A DNA stretch of 64,000 nucleotides from Amphiscolops sp. MND2022 (GCA_964187785.1 OZ076421.1:7192001-7256000); one strand, 5' to 3'; shown: positions 1,159 to 54,242, numbered from the stretch's first letter. Notes: generated by a model from the letters alone, not told the origin. Numbers and translations are program-made.

Positions 1159-4100
1159 ATGGAAAATCAAAAAGCAACTGAGAGTACAGGCTCTTCAACT
1201 GGAGAAATCCAAGAAAGAGCAAACTCAAAAACCGAAAAGACACATCAGAAAATTACCCTACCAACATTCGAAAAACGCGGAATACAGGAGGCGAAGCTAT
1301 GGTGGAGACGATTCAAGCTGTATAATAAAATGACTCAAAACATCGATCTCAACACAATGACCACAGACCGTGAGATACTGGAAAATTACAGGGACGATCT
1401 GGAACACCGGATCAAAGACTTGTTTATTTGGGCATTGGGCGAATCAGCGATACCGGAAATGACAAGAACCGTTAGGGACAATGACCCAAATCGAATGGAC
1501 ATAAATCAACTGTACTCATTTTTCCGGTTACACTTAATACCGGAACAAAACAAATTCCGTAGTAGAGCCGACTTCTTTGGAATAACAAGAGAGAAACACG
1601 AATCAGCGGAAGACGTGTGGACGAGAATCCTTCAAGTGGAAAAGGATTGCGAGTTCGAGAATGTAACGCCAGCCGAACTAATAGCGTCAAAGTTTCTCTC
1701 TGTAATTGGACGATCAACAGGAGACTACGAACTAAAGAAGAAAATTAGAAAAAGTGACATGACGATAGAAACGATAACAGCATTGATACATGAACACATG
1801 TACGACCGACTAAATGACTCGAACAATTCGAACGACGGAAGAGAAATAAAATACGTACAAGAACGGCCACACAAACGAAAATGGACAGAAAGAACCGATG
1901 CAGACAAAATAAAGAAAAGACCAAAATATCAAAATCAAAAACCAAAAGATAATCGATGTGGACAATGCTGAGCACCAAATTGGTCAAGACAACATATCTG
2001 CCCAACAAAATCAGCAGAATGTAGAAAATTGCAAAAGAAGGGGCCACTACGAAAAGATGTGTAGATCGATGAGAAGAGTACAATACGTTGACAAAACAAC
2101 ATCTTCAGCAGAAGAAGATAATTGGGATTATGACAAAATCCAGAGAATAGAAAATACAAAACAAAAGAAAGGCTTTTACAATGCCACACTATTGGTCAAC
2201 AGCGTACCAATCAAATTCATTATTGATAGTGGATCGCCAGTAACACTTATTCCGGAATGCTTTTTGAGCAAAATTACACCAATTGAAACACTCAAGACCA
2301 CTTATAAAGATGTAAACATTCAAAAGATTGACTTTACAGGACAGACGAAAGCAAAAAAATGGTCAAAACAAACAAAGAAACAATGGAACTACCACTATTA
2401 ATTACAAAAGCACAAACCGCCCCGTTAATGGGACTGGACTGGATGCAACGGCTGAAAATCAACTTCAAACAACGACGCAATCCAAATCCACAACATAAAG
2501 TTGGACAACACAGAAAGAAAAATCATAAAACTCCAGAACGACTTCAAAGATTTGTTTTACAACAACAAAGAGATAAAGAATCTCTCAGTGAAAAAGTATT
2601 TGAAAACTGGAGTTCAGATAATACAACAAAAAGGACGACCAATCCCACTACATTTACAATACCAAGTGGCACAGGAGCTGAAACGCCTATTATAACATGG
2701 TTATGTAGAAAAGGCACCAGAAATTACTGAAAACTGCTTCGTAAGTCCTGCGGTAATAACCGTAAAAAAGGACAAATCGATAAAAATCGCACTTGATTTC
2801 AGAAAATTGAACGAAATTACTGTGAAGCGAAAAACACAAATGCCGAATATGGAAGAATTGATATCACGGATCTCAAGAAAGATATCCGAAGGAGAAGACG
2901 GAGAAGTATTAGCAACAAAGCTCGACTTCGATTATGCATACGGACAAATCAAATTAGACGACGATACAAAAAATTTGTGCATATTTACCGTCACAGGAGG
3001 TGATTTCACTGGGTACTACCGTTTCTTGAAAAGTTTCATTGGACCGGCGGACATTCCGACGATTTTCCAAGAACGGATAGACACGACGCTAGAACACAAA
3101 CACCCGGCTTGGTTAGACGATATAATTATTGTCACCAAAGGAAACCTGGAAAAACACGAAGCGCAAGTACGTGAAACAATGACGAAACTGGAAAAAGCAG
3201 GATATAGATTAAATCCAAACAAATGGGAATTCTTCAAAAAAGAAATCGAATTGGTTGGTCACAAAATTGACCAACAAGGGACACGACACCTGCAGGACAA
3301 ATTGGAGGCAATAAAAACGATCAATATTCCAAAAAACGAAAAAGAATTAAAATCATTTCTGGGGGCAATCCAATACTTGTCAAAGTATATTGAAAACCTA
3401 TCAACAAATACGGACATTCTACGAAAACTATTGAAAAAGCAAAACGAGTGGATCTGGACAGAAGAACATACAAGAGTTTTCAATAATTTGAAAGAATGCA
3501 TCACAAAAATCCCGTGCTTAGCTTACTACAACGCCCAGAGCGAAAACATAATTACAACAGACGCCAGTACAAAAGGACTGGGGGCCAGGCTTTGGCAAAA
3601 ACAAAAAACCGGCGAATTAAAGCCAATTGGATTTGCAAGCCAATTTCTATCCGATACAGAAAAGAAGTACGCAATAAACAAATTGGAATTGCTAGTCGTA
3701 GTATGGGGTCTAGAACACTTTGGACTAAATATCTACGGAAAACCAAATGAACTTTTAACAGATCACCAAGCGCTAGAACCATTGATCAAAAGAAACAGGT
3801 CAACTAAAACCTATAGCGCGAGACTAACAAGATGGTTAGATCGCTTGGCTCACTTCGACATTAACATTAAACACATCGCCGGAAAGCACTTAGCACTAGC
3901 GGATTATCTGAGCAGAAATCCAACATCAATGCCAGAACCCATTGAAAACTACGACAAAGAGTACGTAATTAATTGCATAACACCATCACTTGAGTTCATC
4001 AACAATTACGGCTCTATTACCGGTAAGATGAACAAAGAAGCGCGAACGGACGATATCGAGAAGTGTGAACAGAAATTCAACCAATCAGAATCAAGCAAGC

Positions 4101-6136
4101 CGAACGAACCGAAGTCAAAATTGAACAAACAAACAAGCGCAGTTCGTTGCTACCTCAACTCAATACAGTCGATCGCAATACCATTAACAACGTCAAACAC
4201 AATTACGAAACAATAATGGACATTCGCCGCATTGAACAAATTGAAGCAGAATACCCGTCCGAAGAAACATCACAGCTTGTGAACCGCTGGAAAAAATAAG
4301 TAAACCCGGAGAATATAGAACATCTAAAGGAAGCTGGAAAAAGTATAATCCTCCAAGACACCATAGAGCGGAAATAAAACTAATCGAGATGAGTTTAAAC
4401 CAAAGAAGGAATACAATGCTCTGCAACCGCATGGAAGAACAAGACAAAGAACCCGAAGATAACACCACTAAAAGAGAAGAACTCTACCGGGGGATAGAAA
4501 AAATCAGAAACATGCCGACAAATTAAGATGGAGGACAACCGGAAACAAGGGACAACACAACGAAAGTAGAACGCCAACCAGAAACAAACGAGACAGATTC
4601 AACGAGTTCCGCCGACTCATTCGATGTACCAGTCATTAACTTCAAAAGATACCTCGGTACGACCGGAGTTAGATACATCCAAATGGGACAGGCCAGTCAC
4701 ATCCAAGGCGAAAATAAATGGGACTTAGAGGAAACCATCAGACAAACTAACGATGAAAAGCTGTTAAAACATTGGTATGTTTGGAAAGAAGAACGCCGGA
4801 GCAATTACCGGATGATTACAAACCATACCACAAACAGCGGTCAACACGATTCGGCGTGGTATTTTACGATGACCGAATCATAATACCAAAGTCACTGAGA
4901 ACAACAATCATCATGCTCCTACACAAAGGACATGCGGCAATTAACAAAATGACGACGGCGGCAGAACCATTCTGGTGGCCACAAATGACACGAGAAGTAC
5001 AACAAAAATGTGACGAATGTATTCCGTGCAAAATGGCAGGTAAGAACATTAAACCACAAATACCAATGACTGAGATTAACTTTTTACCACCGGTAGAGAA
5101 AACGAATCAAGAAATCCAATTGGATTTCATTGGACCAATAAGATTTAAGCACCGGAGATTCTACATATTACTTTCTATAAACCGGTACAGCAGGTGGCCG
5201 GCTTATGCGAAGCCCCGACAGGAAAAACGAATTTGGAAGAAGGCTACAATATGAACGAAGAATTAAGCCGTTCACTAAACGTAATGAGAACAACGGTCCA
5301 TTCTAGCATAAAAGAAACACCGTTCGAACGCCATTATGGCAGAAAACCACGAACGGAAATTCATAACTAGTTAAATATGTCGCCAAACAAACATTATAAT
5401 GTTTCAGCGAGACCGGAGACACTACAAGTCTACACATTCACCAATGGGAACGGAGCTTACGACCAATTGGTTATGAAAGCCCCAAGAAAGCTAAAAGAAG
5501 ACGTGAGCAACAAATTCCCATACCTATTTCTCGAGAAAAAACAAAACAAAGGAAAATTTGAAAACGCATATGAAAATAAACCACAAACCGCGGTAGCCGG
5601 AACAAAACACACAAAAACAACCGATAAAAACAAAATACTTCATAGAAAACGAATAAGCAAACCATTGAACCCAATATTTCAGAACCCATTATCCCGACGG
5701 GGAGAAAACCCGACGGGAAAGGACGGAAGATTCCTACAACAACGACAACTGGAAGGAGACACAGAGGACCTAGACGTAACGGCAGAACACTCAGAGAGAT
5801 GTAGCACGCCAATTTTAGAGGAGAACATACTGGACAAAACACTGGAAACGGAAAACACAACAATCAGTCCAGTGTATGGCAGAGGCCGAAAAAAAACTGA
5901 TAAGAGACAGAAAACCAAATACAACTCCAACACCAGGATTGGAAATAAACGCAAGACCAACAACAGAAGACGACCCAAACGTGATTACAGTAGTGGACCA
6001 AAACGGTAATAATGATTTAATAAAAACTGAAAACATAGAAGAAATCGAAAACCAAAACGAACAAAGTATACGAAAGTCAACCAGACTAAGATCCACTAAT
6101 CCAATAAAAAGATATGGTAATCCAATCACGTTCTGA
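1159..6136 (+). pseudogene. gag-pol pseudogene of element 1
   Basis: ATG at 1159 after the PBS. Gag with double knuckle CGQC*APNWSRQHIC / CKRRGHYEKMC (TGA at 1969), protease FIIDSGS, RT WLDDII, RNase H TTDAS, integrase HHCC (LHKGH...CDECIPC) and QLDFIGP. Broken into ORF-track pieces 1027, 1958, 2359, 2501, 2807, 4772, 5377, 5876; integrase D/E core deleted near 5230. Confidence 0.92.
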
Positions 6137-24500: not shown

Positions 24501-24873
24501 GAAGAATTTATTTGTTTTTTAATCAGCGCTTCATGAAGTAGTTCTACTAAATACTCTATTTTTTCAATCCACACGAACTGTCCAAAATAGTTCTGAAAAA
24601 TTCTACGAAATTTTAAGGTGTAAAATTGGACTATTTGGCACAAGAAACTCAATTATAAAAGTTGTTTTTTTCAGCGTAACATAAAACACCGGGCGAGACT
24701 AAAGGGACCCCTTTCAGTTTTTTCTTCGGTGTTTTGGGGCTTTTTTCGAAAACCTTTTAATGTCTCCAGAAAATCCCCTTTCAAATTTTCTGCCATTTTG
24801 AAAAATTCCAAAGGGTGTCGCGGTACGACTAACGCTTAACAATCACCCCAGTGCTACAGTGCGTTTCTATTCA

Positions 24874-25230
24874 AACAAGCCGAGAACGGCCAAAGTCGGC
24901 GCCATATCTAAGGCTCAAAATTGAAAAGGGGGACCCTTCGGGCTTTGTGAAACTCCAGCTGGTTGCAAAAAATGAAAAAAAAATGAAGGGGGACCCTTTG
25001 GGCACATGAAAAAATTTCGTAAAAATTTTTTTAAAATGAGATTTTTGAACAGTGTCACAGTGCCGAAAAATGTAAAAGAGGGGACCCTTTGCAATTTTTT
25101 GACATCCATTGTGTTGCAAAATATCGAAACAAATGAAGGGGGACCCTTTGGTGCAATCCAAAAAGTGTCAAAAAGTCTCATAGTGCCGAAAAAAAGTGGG
25201 GTTATGGGGGATCCTTAGTGTGTTTTTGAG
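24874..25230 (-). repeat. Copy of the abundant interspersed repeat
   Basis: AACAAGCCGAGAACGGCCAAAGTCGGCGCCATATCTAAGGCTC at 24874-24916 is the reverse complement of the shared terminus; gives the spurious ORF ending LSLRYGADFGRSRLV. Confidence 0.75.
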
Positions 25231-28200
25231 GTTCTGGACATCTGTTTTGTTTTTTCTTTTCGTTTTGGACGCGCTTCTGAGGCTGGAGTTGTTAAGGTTT
25301 GAAGTTAATGAGGTTTGACGTTGTCGAACAAATGAACAAAAAAGTGGACCTTACGCGTCTAAAAAAAATTTCCGACGATCAATAAAATTTGAGATATTTA
25401 TGAAGATAATTGAAATTTTTCGAAAAAAAGCCAAGTCGCACTTTAATTTTGAACTTTTTTATTGCAAATTTTCAACTTTTTTGAATGTTTGTTGCTAAAA
25501 AAGTCCAAGACGGGTGATATACCGGTGATAAGCTCTCGTTTTTTCTCGTTTTATTGGAGTGAACCCTTGCTTGAATCGATAGTGGAATTATTTGGTTTGC
25601 AGGGGAAACATTGGCCTAGAGATTACTTACTTTTGGAGCCAGTTTTCTTGAATACCTCCGACTAAAAACATCTGCATGAATAAAACGCCCAAAAATCACC
25701 ATAGTGCTGCTGTGATGTTTGTATTTAAAAAAGACCAGCAAATATAAAACAGGAAATTGAACCAACTTTGAGAGAGAGAGGGAGGGAGACGAAAGTATAT
25801 GAACAAATAATGGCGGTGGTGACGGCCAATTAACAACTGCCGCAGAACAAAAGGAATAATAGGAAATACTTATACTGCGGAATTTTACTAATTAAAATTT
25901 CTATCAATTACCGCGGTGTTTTAAAATCTAAGCAAAATTGTGATTGGTTGCATGCAAAACATGCCAATCAGGCAATCTTGCAGATTTGCTCGACTGTTTT
26001 TATACGTTCTACTTCGACGGAAGATTCATTTTTCTCGACAAACGGCACAGATTTAACTAAGAGCTCTCTTCCCCTCTCATTTTGGTGGAGAATTTTTACT
26101 CTCCTCGTTCGTTTCTGATTTGAGTTCTATATTAGAATTTTTCCGCTCTATTCATTCTGCTCTTACTTATTTCAACTCAGATATTTGGCCAACGATTTCT
26201 CACTGCGTAGAATTAGGATCCTATCGTAGAATAATGTTCGCTAGTTTCATATTCCGGCTGATTTTAAATTTTTAGCTGAGAACATTTTCCTGGTATGAAG
26301 ATGGAAATAACAGGCCGAAGTTACATAAATTTGTCTAAGTAACTTTTGTTGTGTAAACTGATTCACCTAAACGTTCTACTGCTATTCAAATCTAACTGAA
26401 AAGAGACATTAAAATTAAAGCGTGTCTTTCAAAACAAAGCGGATTGTATACTTCTTGTGTTTGACAAGTAAATATCCGAGAACAATTGGAACGTTCTTTT
26501 TTTGTTCTATCGATGTCAACTTCAGCTGTAAATTGCCCAAGATGTAGAGCAGTCAATAACAATCTCTTTTATAAACGCGGTTGTTTTAGGAATCTGCTGT
26601 ATAGCTGATTTAAAGGATTGTGGAATAAGGACTGCTGTGACTCGAAGTATAACTAAGTTCAAAATTTCTACTTCTGTTGACGCCTGTCAATTGCAAGATC
26701 GGAAACTATCATTTGAACGTGACTTATGAAACCTATAATTTAGAACACTTGAGACTGCGTCAAGATTTCACATGAAAATTACCCCTTTTAGCAAAAGTGG
26801 AAGTGTAGCTAAAAAAAGGTCATCCGCCCCCTTTTAAAAAAGCACTTATGCAATCACGTAAGTGACGTAAGTTGATCTCTTCAATGCTCAATTTCGTGAT
26901 AATAGTTATTATGTGATTTTCTCGTATGACCTTGAAGGAAAGGTGGTAATTATATTGGAACTGATGATCATCACAATGTGTAAACACTCTTTCGAACCCA
27001 CCTAGCAAACATGCCAAACCACCACCAAGATTCTATACCTAGCCAATATCATTAAATTATGCTTCAACTGACTTATATTTATACCACATTTTCGCCTTAT
27101 ATTTACTGGAAAGATTGATGATACAGTTACATACCATTACTAAATGGAAAGTAAAACGACTGAATAGCTGAAGTCAAGTTGGGTCTGAAGACCAAGAGAA
27201 TATTTAACTTTCCATGCTCTTAAAACGTTTCTCTAAAACTCAGAGCGAATGAGTAATTGGAGAGTCGGAGCGCGTGAAGATGAAGAGCGGAAAGTTTGTG
27301 ACGGACCTCAGAAGATTCACCCTAGTATAAAGCAAGATCGCAGGAGATTCTACAAGTCCAATCGGACCAACCAGCTAAAAGATGCAATCCTTCAGAACTC
27401 GAAAACAAGGATTGTTTAGTAAATCTCCACAGTACTAAACAACTGATTAGGGCGGCAGTAAAGCTTGTGAAGATTCAGCGCAACATAAGGGCAAGCAGTC
27501 GTTGCGACTTCCTTTCAATAATTCAACATATTTGTTTCGTATACGTTTTCTGAACACAGAAAACTCATTTACAGACACTGCTTTGCACTTCTTCGCGCAA
27601 AGTCTTTTGTTCTCACGTACACGACAGGCATTTCTCCTTCAGCATTACGCAGAGTAAGCTATTGAGGGTCTCTTATTCACGGTTATTCAATAATGGAACA
27701 GCCTCCTTTCAGTTTTTTTCGGCATTGTGAGAGTTTTTCGAAAAATTGCAATGTCTTCAAAAGGTCCCCTTCAAATGTTCACAGGTGGATGTGTAAAAAT
27801 GGATGTTAAAAATATTTCATTTATTAGTCCTTTATTAATAACAAAGTTTAGTCGACAATACACTTCGATTATCAGGTTTGCGAAACCTAAAAACAACCTG
27901 GCATTTCCCAGAACGAGTTAATGTTTTTTCCTTAACTTTGAATAAATTGCGATTTTCATTAAGCCCATTGAAGCCCTTGAAGGTGTTTGTTAGTCCGTAG
28001 GTCTTCAGTTAGAGGGTTTAAATACTACTGCTGCCAAAGTAGATATACTATTTTTCGAAAAAAAAAACAAAATGCTACTGATAATACGCAGTTTTACACG
28101 GAAAAGCAACTAGCTTTTCTCAAATTGCAGATACTGAATCAAAATCAAATTGCGAGTTGGTTCGTCTCAGCTTTTACAGACAAAAATCTATAAAAATTGA

Positions 28201-28329
28201 GCGATATTGCCGGTATTTATATGTAGTTTTCAGTTGACAATTTTTTCGTCACTTTCCAGGTATTTCTCATGGTATGTTTTCTATCAATTCTTTTTCTGTT
28301 TAAGCAGTCTTCACTGAGATCCCTCGAAC

Positions 28330-29318
28330 ATGGTTTCAAGTAGTCCTAAAACTGGGATCCATAGATTCTTTCTGGCAATCTACTCTGCCGCTGTCGTTGC
28401 GAGTTTGGATGAACATGTTATAGACGGCCATACCCGGCATTATCACAACATGGATAAGGACATCCCATCAATCGAGCACTGGAATCATTTGTTTGTTAAA
28501 TGGTCAATCCAAACAAAATCTTTACTTGATCAAGGCCGCTTGAGAAGAAACACAAAAGATCTTCCAAGCATTGATGAGATCGAAAAGTACATCGCTACTT
28601 TCAAACCTGCTTTCACGGAAGCCACTGATGTACTGAAGAAACTTGTGAACCATTCGGCAGTTTTGTCGGGGAGGCTGAAATCTGCATCGAGTGTGCATGA
28701 GAAATTGGAACGCAAGGGGTACGATTTGAAGGATCTGACCGATATAATTGGTATGAGATTGACTTGCCAAACAGTGGACGAGACTCTGAGAATCAAGGAC
28801 TTGATCAGCAACACTTCGAAGTGATGGAGACCACATGTTACGGAATGTGTCCTGGAGCTGGGAAATACAAGGAATCGGGATATCGGCGCATCCACCTGAT
28901 ATTGCTCATCAAGTCAGAGAACAAAACAATGGAGCTGCAAGTCGGGACCCCCTACACCAATATGTGGGCAGACTGGGACCACGATTTGGTCTATAAAGGT
29001 CCCAAAGAGTTCGCAGACGATGAAAGTGTGAAAACTTACTCTATTGCGATGGCTGATTACTTCCTGAAACTGGATCAAGAGAGAAACCAACTTCCCGACT
29101 GTCCTGCAATTATGGAGGAGGTCAGCGCGTTGGATATTCTGAGAGACAATGCTGGTGGAGCAGATGCATATGCACTGTATGAAAAACTTGGGTTCCCGCC
29201 CAATGCCTGTTTTTGGTGGAACGACATGAAGTTGGCACTGCCATCTAATGCACATGGCGCCGCTTCAAGTATCCCATTGGGTATTTTAAGTCTGTCTATC
29301 GGGGTTTTGATAAACTAA
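28330..29318 (+). CDS. RelA/SpoT-family small alarmone synthetase-like protein with signal peptide and putative GPI-anchor signal (one-base frameshift near 28806)
   Basis: ORF 28330-28824 has RLKSASSVHEKLERK and DIIGMR; overlapping ORF 28764-29318 has SGYRRIH, ELQVGT and WADWDHDLVYK. Adding one C after 28806 (ATC CAG CAA CAC) joins them into a 329-aa ORF. N-terminus FFLAIYSAAVVAS; C-terminus SNAHGAASSIPLGILSLSIGVLIN. Confidence 0.88.
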
Positions 29319-29455: not shown

Positions 29456-29461
29456 AATAAA
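29456..29461 (+). terminator. Candidate polyadenylation signal AATAAA of the RelA/SpoT-like gene
   Basis: AATAAA 138 nt after the stop codon; the AT-rich context makes a chance match possible. Confidence 0.45.
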
Positions 29462-31303: not shown

Positions 31304-34300
31304 CCCTAGTTGAGACTGCTGGAACTTTTTACATGCTGCAGGCCTGCATGCAGGGTAATTTTTTATAAAACCTAGAAAAGTCATTAAGGTTCCGGTGGTA
31401 AATCTTGTAGAATTACACTGGATTTTCCGCTACTGCAATTAAATTTGAAAATATTTCCCCCTTCTTTTACAGACATGATCACGTTGTCTTCACACATTGA
31501 TTTTGCAAATACTCATCTGATTTAATCACCGCGTCTCAAATAGAACGCTGAAGATGACGCTAGTTTGCTGTTTACATTGTGAATGAAGTTAGTTTGCATT
31601 AAAATGGCGGCAAAATTGTAGGGGTCTCAGCTGCACTTAAAATTAGAACTGATGCATATTAAAACTTGCAGAACTTCATGGCTTGGAATTGCCGCCAAAA
31701 CTTTGATGATTCTTTAAAGCAGCTTGATAAAAGTTGGTGACAACAGGGAAATATTAACGCATTAAAGTTTCCGTAAGGTATTTCGATTATCATAATAAAA
31801 GTTGCTGGCAACATTAAAGTACACATAAAAAGTTGAAGCATGTTCAACAAAGGCAGCGGGCGTCTTGTATTATATAGATTACGTTGTCGTTGCTAACCTT
31901 ATCTACGAGTACTGATATACTTAATTGTACAAGGAGTATACTCAATCCTCAATTGAGGGGATGTCAGAGAGTGACCTTTACTCTCGAACAGAAAATTAAG
32001 AACATTAAATTGAGCAAGTTGTTCATAAATGTTTCCATGCATAGTCTGATATTATTTACAAACACATATGTATCAAAGAACCAAAAGAACTGGGCCATTC
32101 ACCAAATGGTCTTATACAATACAGTCTTTCTCAAGATTCTCTCTCAACAAGCAGTCTGCGACCATCGTTGATATTATTACAGGTACTTTCTCCAGCGTTT
32201 TTGAATTCTCTTCATTTGAACACTCATATTTTACAAAAAGTGGTTACTTTTTATAGTAGTTAGCATGCGTGGCTGGGGAGCAGCCGTTCATGTGTTCGAA
32301 TTCCGCACTGGTCCAAAATTATTTCACATTTGCTAAGGTACACGAAACCAAAAGGCCCCCTTTGGGGTTTTTCTTCACACTGAGATTTTTTTCAAAAACT
32401 GTCCTATTTCACCAAAAAGTTTCTTTTGGATTCATTGATTTTTTTTCCGTAAAGAAAAGGCGTTTTCCGAGCTGTTTCGGTTTTTCGCTTGGTGCAATTT
32501 TCTGAGAAACCATTTTTCGAGAAATTCATCCCAATATTTTGGATTTTAGTTGCTCAGCGTTAAGTACAATTGTTTACAGAGCCTGAATGACCCTTTCATT
32601 TTTCTACTGCTTTTTTAAAAAATCACCACTGAGCTTTTTGACCTCAAGCAAAGCACCGACTTAGACGGTTCCTTTTTGCTGAACTAAGTAGGCACTTCCG
32701 AAAAAAAAAGTATTGAAGAAATTCACAACTACGCGAATTTTCGGTGATCTAGTTAATTCGTACAACGCTAAACTTGATTCGATTTTAAACACTTATCAAA
32801 TTTCCTCTTTTACCGATAATTCGATATCTCTTTTCCTCTCAGATAAATTATTCACACAAGGGTCCCATTTTGTTATACTTACATAACTCATGTAATCGCT
32901 CCAAATTTAGCTTCTATCTACATTTTAAGCATTGAAAAATTGAACTCTCCGAGATATATGCTGCAATTATATTCTGTAACTAATTTGAGCGGAAACTGAA
33001 TTTCGAAACTTCCTAAAGTGAAAATAATGAAAAGCGCCCGCTGAGCTGCAGTTTTTTTCCACCATGAACTACTTTAGCAACAGAGAATCAAAAATTGTTT
33101 AAAACTTGCACAAAATTCCACAAGTATATTTTTGGAGAAAATATACGTTTCTAGCTTTTTAAGAACATTTGAGCGTGACCACTAATCTTGTACCAGTTCA
33201 AAACTTGTACAGAAAGATCAAGAGACTGAATAAATATAACTTTTGAAAATTTTGATATTCAGGAATTTTTTCAATAAACAAGGTTTTTTTTCAATGCAAT
33301 GAAACTGTTTTTGTCTGTGAAAGTCTATGAAAAGGGCTCTTGTCTTTTGAGTATAGACTTACAGAGAAAATTGAAAAAATGCTGAGCGATTATTTTCATG
33401 AAGGAAAATTCAAAGTCAATGTCTTTCAGCAATATTTCTTGTAACAGCCTTTCAAACTGCGAGAGATTTTATTCAAAAAAAGTCTTTGCCATTTAAATAT
33501 AATACAGATGCTATCTCGTTATACTAATAATGAGTAGTTAAAGTTTTCAAGTAACTCAACTCAAAACTTTATACACAACCTCAGTCTAATATTTCATAAA
33601 CAAAAAAAAAGACATTTAATTGTGAAGTGAAACTATAAAAATATTTCTAATTACAATTTCTGGCTCTTCTACCTAATTTTATTCTGCCAGTGGTCACTCG
33701 ATTAAGAAACCTATTTTTAGGGCCAGTTCTTGAAACATTATACTTGGGATCAATTGCGAAATGGAAAGCAGAGCCATTTAGCCACGTTAAATCTAATCGG
33801 TGCCTTTTGAATTTTTTCTGCCAAACACTGCTCGGGGTAACTATTCTAATTTATGTGATAACAACAATAATCCATCATTAGACCAAGCCAAAATTGCAAC
33901 CTTTGGCGCTATATTCCGGAGATAGCTCCCGGCAAATTCGCATGGGAAACAAAGGATGTGAATTTCGAAGGGAAGCTAGCGCTAATTTAATTTTACACAG
34001 TCAAGCCTTTAAATTAAGGCTCTATTTAGCAAATGGGGAAGTCTTTATTTCACAACACTCATGCAAGCGGCGTGAAATAAATTGGTGGCACAAAAAATGC
34101 GACCTTTTTCTCCGCAGGTTGTAATTAGTGAACATTTTGAGCTCGCTTTCAAACAAATAGACCAACATATATTTCGCAATTCTTGGAACCGCCGGCTTCA
34201 AAATAAAAATTGCAGGCTGATTTATTTCAAATTGCAATCCATTTTGATTTCAACATGAAAGTTCAACCCAGTCGTATTGCGCTACGAGCATATACAGACC

Positions 34301-35027
34301 CATTTCTTCTGTTCAAGGAGCTTGTTTTAAAACAGTTTTTTTCTTCTCGATTAGAGTGATTTTATCAGTTTTAGAGCTCCGAAAAGCAACAGAATTGGGA
34401 CTCTATATTTTCAATCTGAAAAACTCTTTCTTGAAATAACAAGCAGAGAACGGCGCAGAGAACGGCCAAAGTCGGCGCCCGGCTCAAGGTATAAAAAAAG
34501 CAAAATATTTCAGGTATGCCAAGAGACACTCTTGCGAAAATTTTAATCAAATTTACAGTGCCCTTGTTCAACTTGCTTGAACTTTTTATAAATTTTTTAA
34601 AAGTTGCCAGAAACTTTTAAAATGATTTTCCAAAAACAAAAACACTTACAGAAACTTTAATGCGTTAACACTTCCCTGTTGTCATCAACTTTTATCAAAC
34701 TGCTTAAAAGAAGCATCAAAGTTTGGGCGGCAATTTCAAGCTGTGAATTTCTGCAAGTTTTATTATGCATCAGCTCTAATTTTAAATGCAGCTGAGACGT
34801 CAACACGTTTGCCGCCATTTTAATGGAAATTAACTTCAATCACAATGTAAACAACAAACTAGTGTCATCTTCAGCGTCCCGTTTGAGAAGCGGTGATTAA
34901 ATCGGATGAGTAGTTGAGAAATTAATGCGTGAATACAACGTGATTGTGTCCGTGAAGGTGGAGGAAATACTTTCAAATTTAACTGCAAAAGTAGAAAATG
35001 CAGCGTAATCTACAAAATTGACCACCG
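31304..35027. mobile_element. Non-autonomous foldback-like DNA element with ~470-bp imperfect TIRs and a CCCTAG terminus
   Basis: 31304-31777 is the reverse complement of 34645-35027 (truncated) and of 43851-44280; the left end CCCTAGTTGAGACTGC matches termini at 47819 and 48829. No transposase inside. Confidence 0.7.
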
Positions 35028-35049
35028 AAAACCTCTTTTACACTGAATC
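31679..35049 (+). repeat. Tandem segmental duplication, copy A (empty insertion site TCTAA at 33585-33589)
   Basis: Colinear with 35052-36964 plus 42812-44324; the ORF track repeats the same short ORFs in both copies. Confidence 0.93.
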
Positions 35050-36964
35050 TTTGGCTTGGAATTGCCGCACAAACTTTGATGATTCTTTAAAGCAGCTTGA
35101 TAAAAGTTGGTGACAACAGGGAAATATTAACGCAATAAAGTTTCCGTAAGGTATTTCGATTATCATAATAAAAGTTGCTGGCAACATTAAAGTACATATA
35201 AAAAGTTGAAGCATGTTCAACAAAAGTAGCGGGCGTCTTGTATTATATAGATTACGTTGTCGTTGCTAACCTTATCTACGAGTACTGATATACTTAATTG
35301 TACAAGGAGTATACTCAATCCTCAATTGAGGGGATGTCAGAGAGTGACCTTTACTCTCGAACAGAAAATTAAGAAGAACATTAAATTGAGCAAGTTGTAC
35401 ATAATTGTTTCCATGCATAGTCTGATATTATTTACAAACACATATGTATCAAAGAACCAAAAGAACTGGGCCATTCACCAAATGGTCTTATACAATACAG
35501 TATTTCTCAAGATTCTCTCTCAACAAGCAGTCTTCGACCATCGTTGATATTATTACAGGTACTTTCTCCAGCGTTTTTGAATTCTCTTCATTTGAACACT
35601 CATATTTTACAAAAAGTGGTTACTTTTTATAGTAGTTAGCATGCGTGGCTGGGGAGCAGCCGTTCATGTGTTCGAATTCCGCACTGGTCCAAAATTATTT
35701 CACATTTGCTAAGGTACACGAAACCAAAAGGCCCCCTTTGGGGTTTTTCTTCACACTGAGATTTTTTTCAAAAACTGTCCTATTTTACCAAAAAGTTTCT
35801 TTTGGATTCATTGATTTTTTTTCCGTAAAGAAAAGGCGTTTTCCGAGCTGTTTCGGTTTTTCGCTTGGTGCAATTTTCTGAGAAACCATTTTTCGAGAAA
35901 TTCATCCCAATATTTTGGATTTTAGTTGCTCAGCGTTAAGTACAATTGTTTACAGAGCCTGAATGACCCTTTCATTTTTCTACTGCTTTTTTAAAAAATC
36001 ACCACTGAGCTTTTTGACCTCAAGCAAAGCACCGACTTAGACGGTTCCTTTTTGCTGAACTAAGTAGGCACTTCCGAAAAAAAAGTATTGAAGAAATTCA
36101 CAACTACGCGAATTTTCGGTGATCTAGTTAATTCGTACAACGCTAAACTTGATTCGATTTTAAACACTTATCAAATTTCCTCTTTTACCGATAATTCGAT
36201 ATCTCTTTTCCTCTCAGATAAATTATTCACACAAGGGTCCCATTTTGTTATACTTACATAACTCATGTAATCGCTCCAAATTTAGCTTCTATCTACATTT
36301 TAAGCATTGAAAAATTGAACTCTCCGAGATATATGCTGCAATTATATTCTGTAACTAATTTGAGCGGAAACTGAATTTCGAAACTTCCTAAAGTGAAAAT
36401 AATGAAAAGCGCCCGCTGAGCTGCAGTTTTTTTCCACCATGAACTACTTTAGCAACAGAGAATCAAAAATTGTTTAAAACTTGCACAAAATTCCACAAGT
36501 ATATTTTTGGAGAAAATATACGTTTCTAGCTTTTTAAGAATATTTGAGCGTGACCACTAATCTTGTACCAGTTCAAAACTTGTACAGAAAGATCAAGAGA
36601 CTGAATAAATATAACTTTTGAAAATTTTGATATTCAGGAATTTTTTCAATAAACAAGGTTTTTTTCAATGCAATGAAACTGTTTTTGTCTGTGAAAGTCT
36701 ATGAAAAGGGCTCTTGTCTTTTGAGTATAGACTTACAGAGAAAATTGAAAAAATGCTGAGCGATTATTTTCATGAAGGAAAATTCAAAGTCAATGTCTTT
36801 CAGCAATATTTCTTGTAACAGCCTTTCAAACTGCGAGAGATTTTATTCAAAAAAAAGTCTTTGCCATTTAAATATAATACAGATGCTATCTCGTTATACT
36901 AATAATGAGTAGTTAAAGTTTTCAAGTAACTCAACTCAAAACTTTATACACAACTTCAGTCTAA

Positions 36965-37184: not shown

Positions 37185-40100
37185 ATGGAAAATACGAACA
37201 ACAACAACGAAACCGACCCAACGGCGGTCAACCAAACAACAGTCGAAAGGACTGAAAGAAACAAGTACAAGATCCCGATCTTATCGGATAGAGAAACTGA
37301 CCTATCAAAAGCCAATCCCAAAATGTGGTGGGAACAAATATCCGAATACATAGATTTGACATACCAAAAGAAACTGGACGAGCTGATGGAACAAGGGACG
37401 GACTCCATGGACCCTCATACAACCTATCACATCAAAGGTGATGTTATATGGGCACTGGGCCCAAAAGCAAAGCACGAAATCATGAGAGGTCAATGGGGAA
37501 AGGAACTTAAAGATATTAGTCTCCAAGAGTTGTTGAAACTATTCAAAAAGACCTTCCTACCAACCAGGAATGTATTCCACAGCCGGGCCCAATTCTTTAA
37601 TATCAAGCAAGAAGATGGCGAAACCCTAGACGAGTACTGGAAGAGGCTGGTAGACATCGAAAGAAAGTGCGAATTTAACACCATCACACCCGAAGACATC
37701 ATTTCATACAAATTCGCAGCAACCATAAACGATAAAAAAGCCCGAGATAAATTCATCAAAGGCCCACTGAAATTATCACTGATATTGGAGACCATTGAGC
37801 TGGACAACTATAACCGTAAATATGGAGACAAACAAACAACCTACAAGAGACAGCGGAAAAACTCATCCGAAAGCACATCAGACGAGGAACAGGTCGGATA
37901 CACAAAACCCGCAACGAGGAAGAAGGCCACGTTCACGGCTAAAAAGAGAAACACGGAGCGGAACTGCCACTTCTGCGGAAAATCCAACTGGACACCCGAC
38001 CACACTTGCCCAGCACGGAAGGCAAAATGTAACAACTGTAAGAAGTCCGGTCATTTTGCAAAGGTCTGCCGATCAAGAACCGTAAACCGGATACAAGAGG
38101 AAGATACCGGTAGCAACACGGAATCATGGCCAGAAATTGACCATATTCAGTCCGTCAACGGCATAAATCGAGTAGACTTCTACAAAGCCATCCTATTGGT
38201 GGACGGACAACCAATTGAATTCATAATTGACACCGGCTCTCCAGTAACGATTATCCCACCAATTATCACTCCAAAACAAATGAAAGCGACTTCAAAGTGT
38301 TTCGTGGACGTAAACAAAAACCCGATAGAATTCAAAGGCGAAGCAATAGTTGAGGTCAAAACAGAGAAAACAAAAGTGATGTTGCCAATCTTAATAACCG
38401 AGAAAAAGAATACACAACCCTTGCTGGGATTGGATTGGCTAGATAAATTGGAAATCGGTTTGCAAGGAAGCCACGAAACAAACATCATCAGGAGCATAAC
38501 CACAAACGAAAAAGGTGAGAAAATTTTTAAAGAATTCGAGGACCTTTTTAAAAACAATCACACCATAAAAAACTTAACCATAGACATTCAATTGAAAAAA
38601 GACGCAAAACCGATACAACAAAAGGGGAGACCAGTACCAATACACTTTCAAAAAATCGTGAAAAAAGAATTAGAAAAATTAATCGAAAAAGGACATTTGG
38701 AAAAAGCTGATAAAACAACTGAAAACTGCTTTGTCTCACCAGCCGTTATAACAATCAAAAAAGACAAATCAGTAAAAATTGCACTAGACTCCCGGAAACT
38801 AAACGAATCTTGCATAAAAAGAAAAGCAACAATGCCAAATATGGAGGAACTAATCAGTCAAATTTCCGCAAAAATTACACAAAATAACGGCGAAATTTGG
38901 ATGTCCAAAATTGATTTAGATTATGCATATGGACAGGCCAAACTATCCGCAGAAGCATCAAGACATTGCGTGTTCTCCATCATTGGCGGCGATTTCACGG
39001 GACACTACCGGTTCAAGAAGGGATTCTACGGCCTATCTGACATACCAACGGTATTTCAAGAACATATAGATAAGGTCCTAGAATTCAAAACGCCGGTATG
39101 GTTAGATGACATCATTTGCGTCACAAACGGAACGATAGAAGAACACGATCGGGAACTACGCGAAGTTCTAATAAAATTGCAAGAAGCCGGTTACCGAGCG
39201 AGTGAAAGAAAAACAGAACTGTTCAAAAAAGAGCTAACCTGGTTAGGGTACTTGATAAACCAAGAAGGGGTAAAGCCAATTAAAGATAAAACCGAGGCTA
39301 TAACAAAATTAAAAGCCCCCACAAACACAAAAGAGCTAAAATCTTTTCTGGGCTCAATACAACATTTATCAAAATTTTTGAACAACTTGTCTAAAAAGAC
39401 AGACAGAATGAGAAAATTACTCAAGAAAGACGTAAAATGGGAATGGACGAAAGAAATAAACGATGATTTTGAACAACTAAAAAAGGAAATAACCGAAACA
39501 CCATGTCTAGCACACTTCGACCCGAAGAAAGATAATTTCATAACCACCGACGCCTGTAATACTGGATTAGGGGCAACCCTATGGCAGAAAGAAAATGAAA
39601 CATTCAGACCGGTGGCGTTTGCCAGCCGATTTCTCACCGAATGTGAACGAAAATATGCTATAAATGAACTAGAATTGCTAGGCGTCTTGTGGGGCCTCGA
39701 ATATTTCAGATATTACGTTTACGGAAAAAAAGTAAACCTTTTGACCGACCACCAGGCACTACAACCACTGCTAAAGCGAAACAGGGCCCACAAACAATAC
39801 AGCGCAAGATTAACACGGTGGCTTGACCGATTGAGCCATTTCGATGTCAACGTGCAATACACCGCTGGTAAAAACATTCCGTTAACAGATTACTTAAGCC
39901 GTCATCCGATCATACACGAACACGAAACGGAAACGCCACACGAAGGCGATGAAAGCGAAGCCGAAGAGGAATTCGTAATCAATCAGATATACGGCTTATT
40001 CGAGTTCAATCGTACGAACGGCAGTATTACGCAACACATGCGACGACCACCACCGGTAAAGAATTCCGACCAATCAGAACGCAGAACGCAAATACGCAAA

Positions 40101-42479
40101 CAAAACGACCGCGAACATTCAATCCAAACTTTCTCACCGCAAAAAGATATTGACTCACCAAACAATTCAAACCTTGATTCGCAAGCACCGAAAATGTCAA
40201 AGATGGATAAAGTAAACGGAATCGATTTACAGTTTATATTCAAAAAACGGGGACATTCCCCAGAAACTAGCCGTCTACGGACCGAACGATTTAAACTTCT
40301 TCAACCAAATCGAACCAGAATTGTGGGAAAAGGCAAGGACAACGAGCGGATATTGGAATATCGTCCTTCACAACAAGACCGAAAAGAAATTGAGAAATTA
40401 AACATCTTGATTTACAATAGATTCTTTTACCATTGTGAGAAACTCGGGACCACCCCACTCAGGGAATTTAACGAAAACCAACACGAGTCTTGGATAAACA
40501 CCTCGTCAGACAATGAAAGCCAGATTAGCCACGTAAAAACCGAAAAGTGCCCAACAAATATCCTCAAAAAGTTCAAAAAACATGAGAGCATCAATCTTAT
40601 CAGATTGAAACAAACAGCGAAGCGAAATGTCCTGCCAGAAGAACGAAACGAGAAAACAGCCGAAACGATCAGAAGAGCCGAAAGAGACTTTTCCATGGAT
40701 TTACCTCTACTAGTTGAGGAAACTGCACAGGACACTAAAATACTTGACGCAATTATCGCGCTAGAAGCTGGAAAAAGAGACGGTATCTTCTACCCATACC
40801 GACCACACCGTGAACATCTGGAGACCAGATTTGGACTATTATTCTACAATGATAGAATAGTCATTCCAGAAGCAATGCGGTCAACCATAATTGCCATGCT
40901 ACACAGCGGCCATGTCTCGATCAACAAAATGGACAAATCAGCAGAAGCATTTTGGTGGCCGGGACTACATCGGGACATTAGAGAAAAGGCAGAAAACTGC
41001 CCCAGTTGCCGAGTAGCAGGTAAGAATCTAAAAACACAATTACCGCAAACGGAAATAAATAGGCTCGAACTTTTAACCGAACCCGGCCAAGAAATTCAAT
41101 TGGACTTCGCCGGTCCAATCAAATCAAAATCGCGCGGAGACATTTACATTTTAGTAGCCATCGACCGTTTTAGCAAATGGCCAACCGCACAAATTTGCAA
41201 AAATACGGACTCTCGGACCGTAATAAAGTTTTTAACAAAATACTGCACCGACAACGGAACACCGAAAACGATACGCACCGACAACGGTAGCTGTTTTAAA
41301 AGCAACGAGTTTAAAGATTACTGCAACGGTGAAAACATTAAACGAATTAGGTGTACCCCGAATTTACATACGGGAAACGGATTGGTCGAGAGAACGATAC
41401 GCACAATTAAGTCATTAACAAGAGCCAATTTAGAAGACGGCCTAACTTTTGAAGAAAGCGTCGCAAGGGCAATTAAAACAATTAGACAAACACCACACAA
41501 CATACTGAAAATGACTCCCTTTCAATTACACCACGGACGAAAACCACGCACACCGATCACCAATCTGATTGGACAACCCACCTGCCTATTAGCGGACTGG
41601 AAGAAAACATTAACCAATTATTTTTTAGCACAACCGGCGGAGCTACAAGTTTTTACAGTCCACGATTCCGACGGGGAACTCGCAGATTATTTGGTCCTCA
41701 ACGAGTCAAGGAAGAGGGGTAGATCGGTAAGAGACAATTTTAAAAGTTACCAATTTTTTGAAAAGGATACCAAGCCCAATGCAATGAAATGCAGGTTCAA
41801 AACCAATAAAATTTTAACCGCAGCTAATGAGACTAAACATACGATAACCACAACCGATGGAAAGGTTATCCACAAAAAACTAGCATCTAACCCCTTTAAA
41901 TTTCAGCCAGCAAAGAAAACAGAAGAGCCGAGGAAACCCACCAACAGATGCACCAGATGCGGCCGATTCAGTCACGATGATCTATGTGACACCCACAAAA
42001 GAATCCGTTCCGAACAACAGGGACAATCAACGAGCGCAGATAAAACCATCCCCACAATGCCAATTGAAAGGTCCGAAGCACGACCGGATATCACGGTAAT
42101 ATCCGACAGCCAGTCATCACACGCGGATGAATTACCGAGCACGGCAAACATTGATCCGGAACTAACCATTACAGCCGAAATTAAATACGACGATGCCGTG
42201 AAACCAATAGAAGAGACTCGAGAGAACGAAACTCCCGCCATATCTCCACCAGTGGACTGCAGCACGGAGAAAACAAAGCGTACTGCTAAGGACTTCGACA
42301 ACACCCCTACTGGGTCGCCACAAAAAATACACACGTCCCCAAATAGAGGTGTAGTAGAACTTAATTTAGACGGGGGGGAAAATATAGAAAACAAGGTGGT
42401 AGAAAAAGGGATCCGCAGATCAGACAGAATAAAATCTGCAAAAAGAGTAGTAAAAATGGGAGGAATAGAATATTTCTAA
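37185..42479 (+). CDS. Gag-Pol polyprotein, 1764 aa (Gag with two zinc knuckles, aspartic protease, RT, RNase H, DDE integrase)
   Basis: CHFCGKSNWTPDHTC and CNNCKKSGHFAKVC; FIIDTGS; WLDDII; TTDAC, ELELLG, TDHQAL; LHSGH...CPSC; QLDFAGP, RTDNG, GLVER. Confidence 0.98.
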   Translation: MENTNNNNETDPTAVNQTTVERTERNKYKIPILSDRETDLSKANPKMWWEQISEYIDLTYQKKLDELMEQGTDSMDPHTTYHIKGDVIWALGPKAKHEIMRGQWGKELKDISLQELLKLFKKTFLPTRNVFHSRAQFFNIKQEDGETLDEYWKRLVDIERKCEFNTITPEDIISYKFAATINDKKARDKFIKGPLKLSLILETIELDNYNRKYGDKQTTYKRQRKNSSESTSDEEQVGYTKPATRKKATFTAKKRNTERNCHFCGKSNWTPDHTCPARKAKCNNCKKSGHFAKVCRSRTVNRIQEEDTGSNTESWPEIDHIQSVNGINRVDFYKAILLVDGQPIEFIIDTGSPVTIIPPIITPKQMKATSKCFVDVNKNPIEFKGEAIVEVKTEKTKVMLPILITEKKNTQPLLGLDWLDKLEIGLQGSHETNIIRSITTNEKGEKIFKEFEDLFKNNHTIKNLTIDIQLKKDAKPIQQKGRPVPIHFQKIVKKELEKLIEKGHLEKADKTTENCFVSPAVITIKKDKSVKIALDSRKLNESCIKRKATMPNMEELISQISAKITQNNGEIWMSKIDLDYAYGQAKLSAEASRHCVFSIIGGDFTGHYRFKKGFYGLSDIPTVFQEHIDKVLEFKTPVWLDDIICVTNGTIEEHDRELREVLIKLQEAGYRASERKTELFKKELTWLGYLINQEGVKPIKDKTEAITKLKAPTNTKELKSFLGSIQHLSKFLNNLSKKTDRMRKLLKKDVKWEWTKEINDDFEQLKKEITETPCLAHFDPKKDNFITTDACNTGLGATLWQKENETFRPVAFASRFLTECERKYAINELELLGVLWGLEYFRYYVYGKKVNLLTDHQALQPLLKRNRAHKQYSARLTRWLDRLSHFDVNVQYTAGKNIPLTDYLSRHPIIHEHETETPHEGDESEAEEEFVINQIYGLFEFNRTNGSITQHMRRPPPVKNSDQSERRTQIRKQNDREHSIQTFSPQKDIDSPNNSNLDSQAPKMSKMDKVNGIDLQFIFKKRGHSPETSRLRTERFKLLQPNRTRIVGKGKDNERILEYRPSQQDRKEIEKLNILIYNRFFYHCEKLGTTPLREFNENQHESWINTSSDNESQISHVKTEKCPTNILKKFKKHESINLIRLKQTAKRNVLPEERNEKTAETIRRAERDFSMDLPLLVEETAQDTKILDAIIALEAGKRDGIFYPYRPHREHLETRFGLLFYNDRIVIPEAMRSTIIAMLHSGHVSINKMDKSAEAFWWPGLHRDIREKAENCPSCRVAGKNLKTQLPQTEINRLELLTEPGQEIQLDFAGPIKSKSRGDIYILVAIDRFSKWPTAQICKNTDSRTVIKFLTKYCTDNGTPKTIRTDNGSCFKSNEFKDYCNGENIKRIRCTPNLHTGNGLVERTIRTIKSLTRANLEDGLTFEESVARAIKTIRQTPHNILKMTPFQLHHGRKPRTPITNLIGQPTCLLADWKKTLTNYFLAQPAELQVFTVHDSDGELADYLVLNESRKRGRSVRDNFKSYQFFEKDTKPNAMKCRFKTNKILTAANETKHTITTTDGKVIHKKLASNPFKFQPAKKTEEPRKPTNRCTRCGRFSHDDLCDTHKRIRSEQQGQSTSADKTIPTMPIERSEARPDITVISDSQSSHADELPSTANIDPELTITAEIKYDDAVKPIEETRENETPAISPPVDCSTEKTKRTAKDFDNTPTGSPQKIHTSPNRGVVELNLDGGENIENKVVEKGIRRSDRIKSAKRVVKMGGIEYF

Positions 42480-52535: not shown

Positions 52536-54242
52536 ATGCCTTCCACAAGAAAGCAGAAAGCAAAGGAAAAGCGGTCAAGGCAATCAGACGTAATGACTGA
52601 TCTTGAAAAAATGAATGACATGTTGGGAAATTACCCGGAAAATCAATCAGACGTTGATCTGAATGAAAATGTAGAAGTGGACTCAAGGTCCAATGGGACA
52701 AGGACCGACATGATCAAGAATTGTGAGGATTTTAGGACGTTATTAATTTCAGAAGATAGAAATAGATGTGAAACGACAATGGAAACTAATAGACTCATTT
52801 CTGAGGAAATATCTTACCACTTGAATAGGAAAATAGATGAACTGAAAAGGAATTTTGACACACAAATTACAGAGTCTATTAACTCTGCAATTCATGATTC
52901 AATCCTTCCTTCAATCCAAAATTCGTTGTCAGGACAAAATAGCGGGGTAGGGACAAATGTGGACTCAAGGTCCAGTAGACTAAGCAGGAACACCGAAGGC
53001 AAAAAGCACCAAAGTGCTTGGGAAAATACACAAAATAGAGTACAGTCAAACTTAGACAATCATCACCGTTCTAGAGATAGCTCAATAAGCTCATTGGACT
53101 GTAGGGATGATCATGCTATGGTGACAGGAGCCAACCCTACCCCTCGTATGGTTCCTGAATTTCTTACTGGGCGACCCACACAATCCCGAGATAACCCGCA
53201 AAACCAAGGCCCCGTAGATCCTATGTCTCCTACCACGTCACCCCAAGACAAGGAGACTATGGTTCCCAATCCGGCTATAGACCCTCTCACATGCCTTGCT
53301 GATGTTTTAACGGGTATGACCAATAAGCAAACCCCACAAACACTCATGGTACGACCCGTCAGCACAACTACACAAACTTTTGACGGGAAATCTGAAAAAT
53401 TCGAACTCTTTGAAGATCTTTTTCATACAATGATAAAAATGTAACCAGAAATGACTGAAACAATGAAGATTAACCACTTCCAATCCCTCTTACGTAAAAA
53501 TGCACTACAAACCTTTCGTAATATCAACTCCGCCAATAGGCAGACACTGGAAGTCGTCCTTGCGGTCTTCCGACGAAAGTACGTCAAGCGGGAATCTCAA
53601 GCCACTGCCAAACACAAATGGCATAAATTAGTGTTCGACCCCAACACTATGAAACTTCCAGATTTCCTTGAGGAACTCAACCAGGGAGCAGAAAAAGCGT
53701 TTGGCGAAAAAGCCCAAGCAATGATCGACAGCTTCTTATACGCCAAACTGCCCCCCAAACTCAAGAGATCGGTAAATATGACACGGCTTGAGAACGCCTC
53801 ATATGAAGAGATCGTTACCCATTTGGAACGCGAACTAGAACTCAACGGACTTGAGGGAGGTGACGACATTACTGTACCTACAATGTCTACTGCCCCTACA
53901 GCGACACGACCGGGAACTGGCCTCCTTTCTTCCAGCATTGATCCCAATGTCACCTGCAACTACTGCAAAAAACCTGGCCACGTCAAAGATGACTGCCGAA
54001 AACTCAAACGAAAAGAGGAACAAAGACGCAACGACGGACAGGATAACAAAAAAGAATATCCAAAATGTCCAACTTGCGACAAAACAAACCACCCGGCGGA
54101 ACGATGTTGGAAAGGCGCTGGAGCCCACCTCAAGCCCAAAAACCTCAAATTGGAGGACGCAAAACAAGATGATGCGCCCACCATCTCATATGATACTAAC
54201 AACAAGCAACCCTCTTCTATCTTAAAAAACTCAAAAAACTAG
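52536..54242 (+). pseudogene. gag of element 3 (long N-terminal extension, capsid-like region, two Cys/His knuckles), one in-frame stop
   Basis: MPSTRKQKAK...; TAA at 53442-53444 in frame with 53451; FDGKSEKFELFEDLF; CNYCKKPGHVKDDC and CPTCDKTNHPAERC. Confidence 0.9.
54233..54239 (+). promoter_or_regulatory. Candidate -1 ribosomal frameshift heptamer A AAA AAC at the gag end
   Basis: TCA AAA AAC TAG puts AAAAAAC in the correct X XXY YYZ phase right before the gag stop; pol starts downstream in another frame. Confidence 0.55.

Follow-up and report, generated by a model that had tools for sequence, protein, structure and literature searches.

The window analysed here, a stretch of 64,000 nucleotides from Amphiscolops sp. 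MND2022 (GCA_964187785.1 OZ076421.1:7192001-7256000), carries on its plus strand, at 28330-29318, a member of a family of eukaryotic small alarmone synthetase (SAS) homologues within the RelA/SpoT homologue (RSH) superfamily. The intact allele of this gene encodes a protein of 332 aa (P0001) in a second public assembly and, judged by its sequence and modelled fold, is probably a SAS-like nucleotide pyrophosphokinase of the secretory pathway, encoded by a single-exon gene of an animal, hydrozoan-like genome. A preliminary description of this DNA had proposed a SAS-type gene in an animal genome; its synthetase-only RSH character is borne out, whereas the copy in the window is frameshifted and presumably a null allele.

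The synthetase gene and its intact allele

No single open frame spans 28330-29318. The listing of open reading frames (ORFs) gives two in different frames, 28330-28824 (164 aa) and 28764-29318 (184 aa, meaningful only from 28803 on), so the restored protein of 329 aa that had been described does not correspond to any frame of the window; the natural intact product is P0001. The 5' piece (28330-28824, +) consists of codons 1-159, which are authentic (Met1-Ile159), followed by five out-of-frame codons (SNTSK) and a TGA at 28822-28824, and is identical to P0001 at 159 of 160 residues. The 3' piece (28803-29318, +) corresponds by tblastn to Asp162-Asn332 of the intact allele plus the stop codon, with 168 of 171 residues identical. 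A protein search with the 3' frame retrieved P0001, which is uninterrupted and 98-99% identical and is encoded on L001, a sequence of 374 kb in the second assembly (ENA ERZ25074608). L001 and the window run collinearly for 16.9 kb with 99.07% identity, so L001 represents the same locus in another haplotype or individual.

Within the gene, the sole length difference between L001 and the window is 10 bp. The missing sequence, TGATCTCCGC, lies between two TGATC repeats (5-bp direct repeats), and the window has at the junction (28802-28806, +) a single TGATC where the aligned L001 reads TGATC-TCCGC-TGATC. Relative to the intact allele, the break is a 10-bp deletion and not a one-base slip; it lies in a variable loop that separates a helix from strand beta3. 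Base substitutions distinguish the two alleles as well: there are 10, which affect 8 codons (4 synonymous and 4 nonsynonymous) and amount to about 1% at the base level, similar to the flanks (~0.9% across 17 kb). The deletion shifts the frame after Ile159 and brings in the stop at 28822, and thus truncates the product at residue 164. As this truncation precedes the G-loop and the catalytic Glu, the window copy, as written, cannot make an active enzyme.

Similarity to RSH synthetases was detected in both halves of the window copy. Against the Pfam RelA_SpoT profile (PF04607, curated gathering score of 27 bits), the N-terminal piece (28330-28821) matches profile positions 1-50 with 36 bits (E 9.4e-9) and the C-terminal piece matches positions 63-111 with 29 bits (E 1.3e-6), while P0001 scores 72 bits (E 6e-20). 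The synthetase motifs quoted in the preliminary description were all located in the window: RLKSASSVHEKLERK at 28672-28716, DIIGMR at 28741-28758, SGYRRIH at 28875-28895, ELQVGT at 28932-28949 and WADWDHDLVYK at 28965-28997. The scores of both halves above the threshold and the presence of all these motifs indicate that the RSH synthetase similarity is real and far beyond chance. The SYNTH domain, delimited with Pfam at 28669-29003 (+) and interrupted by the frameshift, corresponds to about residues 80-230 of the intact protein. RelA_SpoT was the only domain found by Pfam in the window pieces, in P0001 and in six relatives, none of which has an HD, TGS or ACT domain, in agreement with the architecture first described.

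The roles of the catalytic residues are documented for SaRelP, in which Arg78 and Arg112 stack on the adenine, Lys80, Ser84, Lys88 and Arg91 bind phosphates, Asp107 and Glu174 bind Mg, His190 binds the ribose and Tyr151 is the G-loop residue (PMC5794853). From motif spacing, together with the RelQ alignment and the family alignments, R78, R112, K80, S84, K88 and R91 of SaRelP were mapped to R115, R143, K117, S121, K125 and R128 of the intact protein, and D107, E174, H190 and Y151 to D138, E205, H221 and Y188. Throughout the family, in its hydrozoan, centipede and metagenome clades, each of these ten residues, listed for RelP as binding ATP, Mg or the acceptor, is either invariant or conserved to at least 90%. 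In the window copy, R115, K117, S121, K125, R128, D138 and R143 lie upstream of the break, and the G-loop Y188, E205 and H221 lie downstream of it in the other frame; the full catalytic set is united in one polypeptide in P0001 and across the family, not in the window copy.

Among solved structures, the best sequence match is to B. subtilis RelQ/YjbM (5dec, E 2.8e-13). An AlphaFold model of the intact allele (predicted local distance difference test score, pLDDT, 87; predicted template modelling score, pTM, 0.80) has an RSH-type fold, and its top Foldseek matches are RelP (6ex0) and RelQ (5dec/5ded), with E values of ~3e-10 and target template modelling (TM) scores of 0.73-0.78. CapRel and the exported Streptomyces SAS 8vx3 can be superposed on the model as well. 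By profile, predicted fold and residues, the intact allele is a member of the RSH SYNTH group.

Predicted secretory anatomy, relatives and origin

Around the SYNTH domain, the protein has the features of a candidate secretory precursor. The N-terminus (MVSSSPKTGIHRFFLAIYSAAVVA; 28330-28401, +) resembles a signal peptide, with small residues at -3/-1 before Ser25 and a Kyte-Doolittle 12-residue maximum of 2.28. Such a hydrophobic N-terminal segment is present in 17 of the 17 eukaryotic members scored versus none of the six non-eukaryotic relatives scored (maxima ≤1.14). It is followed by a conserved segment, GHSRDYHLLD...W..W, which is predicted to be ordered, and by the conserved dibasic RLRR (residues 70-73; 28537-28548, +), a candidate proprotein-convertase site at which the protein may be cleaved. 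The aligned position holds RxK/RR in P0001-3, P0006-9, P0013 and P0024, and SRRD instead in P0010 and P0011.

Downstream of the SYNTH domain, a C-terminal extension (29004-29234, +; alignments A2 and A4) forms in the model a long helix and contains a conserved P-x-C-P (C261) and the sequence PPNACFWWND (C297). Its AlphaFold pLDDT exceeds 90, and its first part is common to the phage relatives (PDCP...LCLE). The hydrozoan, centipede and metagenome clades retain a CYGxC insert and the two additional cysteines, C261 and C297, four conserved cysteines in all; such pairs would be expected in an oxidising, extracytoplasmic location. The protein ends in a hydrophobic tail (29235-29315, +), in which the small residues GAASS precede IPLGILSLSIGVLIN; the Kyte-Doolittle maximum is 2.54 and, by eye and by hydropathy, the tail resembles a glycosylphosphatidylinositol (GPI) attachment signal or a membrane anchor. 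Similar tails are found in most hydrozoan members and are absent from P0015, P0026 and P0029; in P0005 and P0027, a transmembrane segment is accompanied by a cytoplasmic tail.

The protein search gave 19 relatives, and most of the full-length ones have 320-346 aa. Orthologues occur in Clytia hemisphaerica (P0007, encoded in one exon of a 1.96-Mb scaffold, with a 7tm_1 G protein-coupled receptor gene about 3 kb away), in Hydra vulgaris (P0020, XP_065674469, one exon of 1884 nt on a 44.7-Mb chromosome) and in the centipede Strigamia maritima (P0026, UniRef record T1IUF0). The Hydra gene (L012:3001-4884, CP147951.1) is a head-to-tail fusion of two complete SYNTH units in a single-exon ORF of 627 aa. 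A protist transcript from EukProt (P0027) also encodes two domains, with the transmembrane segment and cytoplasmic tail already mentioned, and the P0029 cluster and P0013/P0021 come from marine metagenomes. The Hydra, Clytia and Strigamia sequences are already public under the automatic names 'uncharacterized' or 'RelA/SpoT domain-containing protein'.

In its own species, the window gene is one of several paralogues, some of them broken or catalytically degraded. P0022 (L006:10001-10990, ENA ERZ25074608 ctg184404) has an open frame of 329 aa with a putative signal peptide and a hydrophobic tail, and carries the changes K117I, G141E, E205K and H221R (GRLKS>TRLID, DIIGMR>DIMEMR, ELQIGT>KLEIGT); it may be either a pseudoenzyme or a decaying copy. 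Another paralogue, about 86-90% identical (P0028 and P0004, also ENA ERZ25074608 ctg184404), is split into an N-terminal ORF of 194 aa and a C-terminal ORF of 136 aa, the former running out of frame past HFEVKE through an independent frameshift.

The family is under purifying selection wherever this can be measured and is maintained by selection. The ratio of nonsynonymous to synonymous substitution rates (dN/dS) is 0.07 between Clytia and a close relative (dS 0.95) and 0.28 between P0002 and P0003 (dS 0.50). The remaining pairs are saturated at synonymous sites (dN ≤ about 0.8), and therefore only these two values are usable. In view of this selection, the earlier characterization of the gene as horizontally acquired and domesticated fits the family.

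An exhaustive profile search returned 2375 matches at E≤1e-3, of which only 22 representatives reached E≤1e-30. An unrooted tree built from the 150 best relatives groups the eukaryotic sequences into a single clade (Shimodaira-Hasegawa-like approximate likelihood ratio test, 90), which is nested within those of phages and bacteria. Outside eukaryotes, P0038 is the nearest relative (36% identity over 181 residues, E 2e-30); it has the P-D-C-P post-domain extension in common with the family, and its gene immediately follows a portal gene on a 48.7-kb phage contig, with an Acb5 gene nearby (L015:7454-10741). P0041 lies on a phage-like contig with an integrase, and the IMG/VR relatives (L014:28-15306) lie between polyvalent proteins of 2556 and 2172 aa with methylase, SNF2, Zeta-toxin and ART domains. 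Many of the next-tier matches are C-terminal modules of polyvalent proteins with LPD1, Portal_Mu, RadC or InPase domains. The position of the phage relatives, beside a portal gene or between polyvalent proteins, suggests that they are virion-delivered effectors.

Because the prokaryotic diversity is huge and the eukaryotic range patchy, we infer a transfer from a phage or bacterium to a eukaryote. The hydrozoan, centipede and protist genes could reflect either one ancient gain with many losses or a later spread. The donor search of genome contigs gave no match with P0038 and, with alignment A5, one weak match to a Christensenellaceae metagenome-assembled genome, and thus no donor species. A lead from the protein atlas towards a Nucleocytoviricota (giant-virus) origin was dropped, the IMG/VR relatives being located between polyvalent proteins of phages or conjugative elements.

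Compared with known systems, the family resembles RelQ/SAS1 (YjbM) and RelP/SAS2 (YwaC) of Firmicutes (5dec, 5ded, 6ex0, 6ewz) in having a lone SYNTH domain, the same fold and the same ATP, Mg and G-loop residues. However, the identity is only about 22-29%, and the window family adds the predicted signal peptide, the N-terminal animal-specific segment, the CYGxC insert, the Cys-containing extension and the hydrophobic tail, and has Gly in place of Arg in the E-x-Q-x-R-T motif. Each half of the window copy scores 24-25 bits against the RelQ/YjbM equivalog NF053588 of NCBIfam (cut-off 320), and the score against the long RSH model TIGR00691 (spoT_relA) is 20 bits (cut-off 499). The phage SAS-like proteins (P0038, P0040, P0042 and L014) are the closest outside eukaryotes and share the post-domain extension with P-D-C-P and the following Cys, but they are encoded in phage genomes, lack the signal peptide, the CYGxC insert and the PPNxCFxWxD end, and retain the Arg of E-x-Q-x-R-T. 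The toxSAS proteins (FaRel, FaRel2, CapRel, Tas1) have the SYNTH fold in common with the family, but the matches to FaRel2 and CapRel are weaker than those to RelQ and RelP, and the window locus has no antitoxin or immunity neighbour, pseudo-ZFD or secretion-system carrier domain. Mesh1 and the plant and algal RSH proteins belong to the same superfamily and are also eukaryotic; however, Mesh1 is hydrolase-only (HD) and plant RSHs are long and plastid-targeted, whereas the window family is synthetase-only and predicted to be targeted to the secretory pathway. By these sequence comparisons, the family is not a RelQ/RelP equivalog, a toxSAS of the toxin-antitoxin type or a long RSH.

The best analogue of the window family is the class of bacterial exported alarmone synthetases (EAS), which work at low ATP, lack an immunity gene and kill when they are retained in the cytoplasm (PMC12691689). 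Like the window family, SaEAS and VpEAS (8vx3; PMC12691689) are SYNTH-only and have no adjacent immunity gene; they carry an N-terminal export signal, such as is predicted in the window family, and their site of action or storage is outside the cytoplasm. The model of the intact allele matches 8vx3 with E 6e-6 and a target TM of 0.67, and the 14% identity in the structural alignment indicates an analogous solution rather than an orthologue. In contrast to EAS, the host of the window family is an animal and the predicted export signals are eukaryotic, with an endoplasmic reticulum (ER) signal, a dibasic site and a GPI-like tail.

Proposed activity and alternative explanations

We propose that the intact product is a pre-pro-protein of 332 aa in which a signal peptide, an animal-specific N-terminal segment ending at RxRR, the SYNTH domain, the Cys-containing extension and a GPI-signal-like tail succeed one another. 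It would be translocated into the ER, could be cleaved at RxRR, and would then be displayed or released. At the cell surface or in a secretory compartment, it would use ATP as the donor and place its beta,gamma-pyrophosphate on the 3'-OH of a purine nucleotide, yielding (p)ppGpp and/or (p)ppApp. Eukaryotes would have acquired the family from a SAS lineage of phages or bacteria, and selection would have maintained it in hydrozoans. The window copy carries a 10-bp microhomology deletion that truncates it at residue 164. Homology, fold, conservation of the residues, the break, integration into the genome and purifying selection in relatives are what the data show directly; secretion, cleavage, anchoring, enzyme activity, substrate and biological role are what we infer, with different degrees of confidence. 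An extracytoplasmic location of the intact protein is the part we hold most firmly, as probable; catalytic activity of the intact enzyme is fairly likely, and we moderately favour a role directed to microbes or prey over one in stringent-type signalling of the animal itself. The complete scenario is put forward tentatively, at somewhat less than even odds: a synthetase of phage origin would have been domesticated in hydrozoans, at least one centipede and a protist, and would pass through the secretory pathway to produce (p)ppGpp or (p)ppApp on the animal's surface or inside a secretory organelle.

Several observations weigh against this proposal. In all examined animal-type members except P0014, Gly takes the place of the Arg in E-x-Q-x-R-T. 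Nucleotide substrates are scarce outside cells. The signal-peptide and GPI calls are heuristic, made from hydropathy and by visual inspection. Other genome copies look unstable (P0022, P0028/P0004), and the family may be decaying in the window species. Finally, the four sequencing runs found represent one sample and, with even depth over the gene and its flanks, behave as DNA. Their Logan unitig sets break at heterozygous sites inside the gene, with paralogue contigs piling up at 28614-29066, and decide neither for nor against the 10-bp deletion.

The intactness of the same locus in the second assembly and this silence of the unitigs at the deletion site leave room for an assembly or consensus error, in which case the animal would have only intact copies and the window gene would be functional. 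We consider this improbable: the 10 bp were lost between 5-bp direct repeats outside any homopolymer, which is typical of replication slippage and not of long-read consensus errors, the 10 substitutions in the gene and the divergence over 17 kb between the assemblies are what separate haplotypes would show, and the close paralogue P0028/P0004 is independently frameshifted. The loss, at a microhomology in non-repetitive sequence, looks like a real mutation. An origin of the gene from bacterial or phage contamination, or from a very recent unexpressed insertion, is effectively refuted. The coding sequence is intronless and its closest non-eukaryotic relatives are phage proteins, as such an origin would have it, but kilobases of AT-rich animal DNA and gypsy elements flank the gene in two assemblies, read depth is equal over the gene and its flanks, the Hydra and Clytia orthologues reside on chromosomal scaffolds, a predicted signal peptide of eukaryotic type, a dibasic site and an AATAAA signal are present, and dN/dS is well below 1.

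Two further explanations concern what the intact protein does. It might be a delivered toxin, activated by a convertase, that enters prey or bacteria and acts by ATP depletion through (p)ppApp, as Tas1 and FaRel do, or by tRNA CCA pyrophosphorylation, as FaRel2 and CapRel do. A signal peptide, a pro-region and a dibasic site are a common layout of cnidarian secreted toxins; the protein is predicted to have the same layout, and the family is carried by two venomous lineages, hydrozoans and a centipede. The proteins most closely related to it are effector-type SAS proteins carried by phages, FaRel2 (E 2.4e-6), CapRel and PADLOC PDC-S33 are matched more weakly, and bacterial exported SAS enzymes are lethal once in the cytoplasm (PMC12691689). 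However, the terminal hydrophobic tail of most hydrozoan members suggests retention on the membrane of the producer, a translocation domain is absent, sequence and fold are nearer to RelQ/RelP than to the tRNA-modifying toxSAS, and no paper linking RelA/SpoT with cnidarians, Hydra, centipedes or venom was found in the collection searched; we regard delivery as a toxin as unlikely. The Arg to Gly change, the open frame of P0022 without K117, E205 and H221 and the little ATP at an extracellular location would suit a pseudoenzyme, that is, a non-catalytic nucleotide-binding or structural protein with the SAS fold. This is quite improbable, since the ten ATP, Mg and acceptor residues vary hardly or not at all among the hydrozoan, centipede and metagenome clades, purifying selection is strong, and the exported bacterial SaEAS works at low ATP, with a Km of 80 uM (PMC12691689).

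Genomic setting and significance of the family

The gene is a single exon without intron, and Ty3/gypsy elements flank its region in the window, so that the earlier picture of an intron-less coding sequence among host-type repeats holds. One element has an uninterrupted ORF of 1764 aa for gag, protease, reverse transcriptase, RNaseH and integrase at 37185-42479 (+) and is possibly young and active; degraded or split gypsy copies lie at 2807-6009 and 52536-59278. The coding sequence had been described as more GC-balanced than its surroundings, and its GC content is indeed 45% versus 36-37% in the 5-kb flanks, but such a contrast between exon and intergenic DNA is ordinary and no sign of a recent transfer. 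AT-rich DNA surrounds the gene, which has no close neighbours: leaving aside the ORFs that overlap it, there is no ORF of at least 90 aa within about 2.5 kb on either side, the nearest being at 24871-25161 and 31884-32171. No terminal or direct repeats bracket the gene, and transposon capture is therefore not indicated.

Downstream of the gene, an AATAAA polyadenylation-type signal (29456-29461, +) that may be used by its transcript begins 138 nt past the stop codon and is identical in the other haplotype. Just upstream of the ATG, 28258-28308 contains a donor-like CAG/GTATTT and a pyrimidine-rich, acceptor-like TTTCTGTTTAAG/CAG, identical in both haplotypes, which could be a small intron of the 5' untranslated region or a trans-splice acceptor. 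Some 0.5-1.5 kb upstream, 27557-27858 and 26802-26952 reach Logan word depths of 3x10^5 and 2.5x10^4 versus ~75 in the flanks, and are very high-copy repeats with many alternative junctions. Elsewhere in the window, a tandem duplication of ~3.4 kb occupies 31412-35673, downstream of the gene (copies 31679-32297 and 35052-35673, 98-99% identical, with inverted arms of 347 nt), and 59279-63725 (-) contains ORFs of 407, 247, 172, 171 and 159 aa, with no Pfam match in the two that were scanned (407 and 247 aa).

An early survey found no SAS in animals (Atkinson et al. 2011, PMC3153485), and a report of ppGpp in flies and human cells stated that no metazoan ppGpp synthase was known (Ito et al., PMC7666150). 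The 2019/2020 RSH census scanned eukaryotes and did not discuss animals. No description of the window family was found in the literature with searches for RelA SpoT together with cnidaria, Hydra, centipede or venom, or for the database accessions. What is known already consists of database entries with automatic names, and the family itself is undescribed. It was not found in insects or mammals and does not explain their ppGpp.

The genomes of some animals therefore contain a conserved SAS homologue that retains all the residues listed for the binding of ATP, Mg and the acceptor, and the predicted eukaryotic secretion signals on it point to alarmone chemistry outside the cell. The family cleanly illustrates the recruitment of a phage-type gene into animal genomes. 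Its birth and death are ongoing within a single species, which has, beside an intact and a null allele, one paralogue with a frameshift and one that is catalytically degraded. The null status of the window copy lowers its individual value, not that of the family, for which Hydra and Clytia are tractable models for direct tests. If the secretory-routed animal synthetase proposed here is real, it would be the first alarmone synthetase of animals; the segment upstream of RxRR could then be a built-in inhibitor freed by convertase cleavage, and the animals might use the enzyme in talking to, restraining or poisoning associated bacteria or prey.

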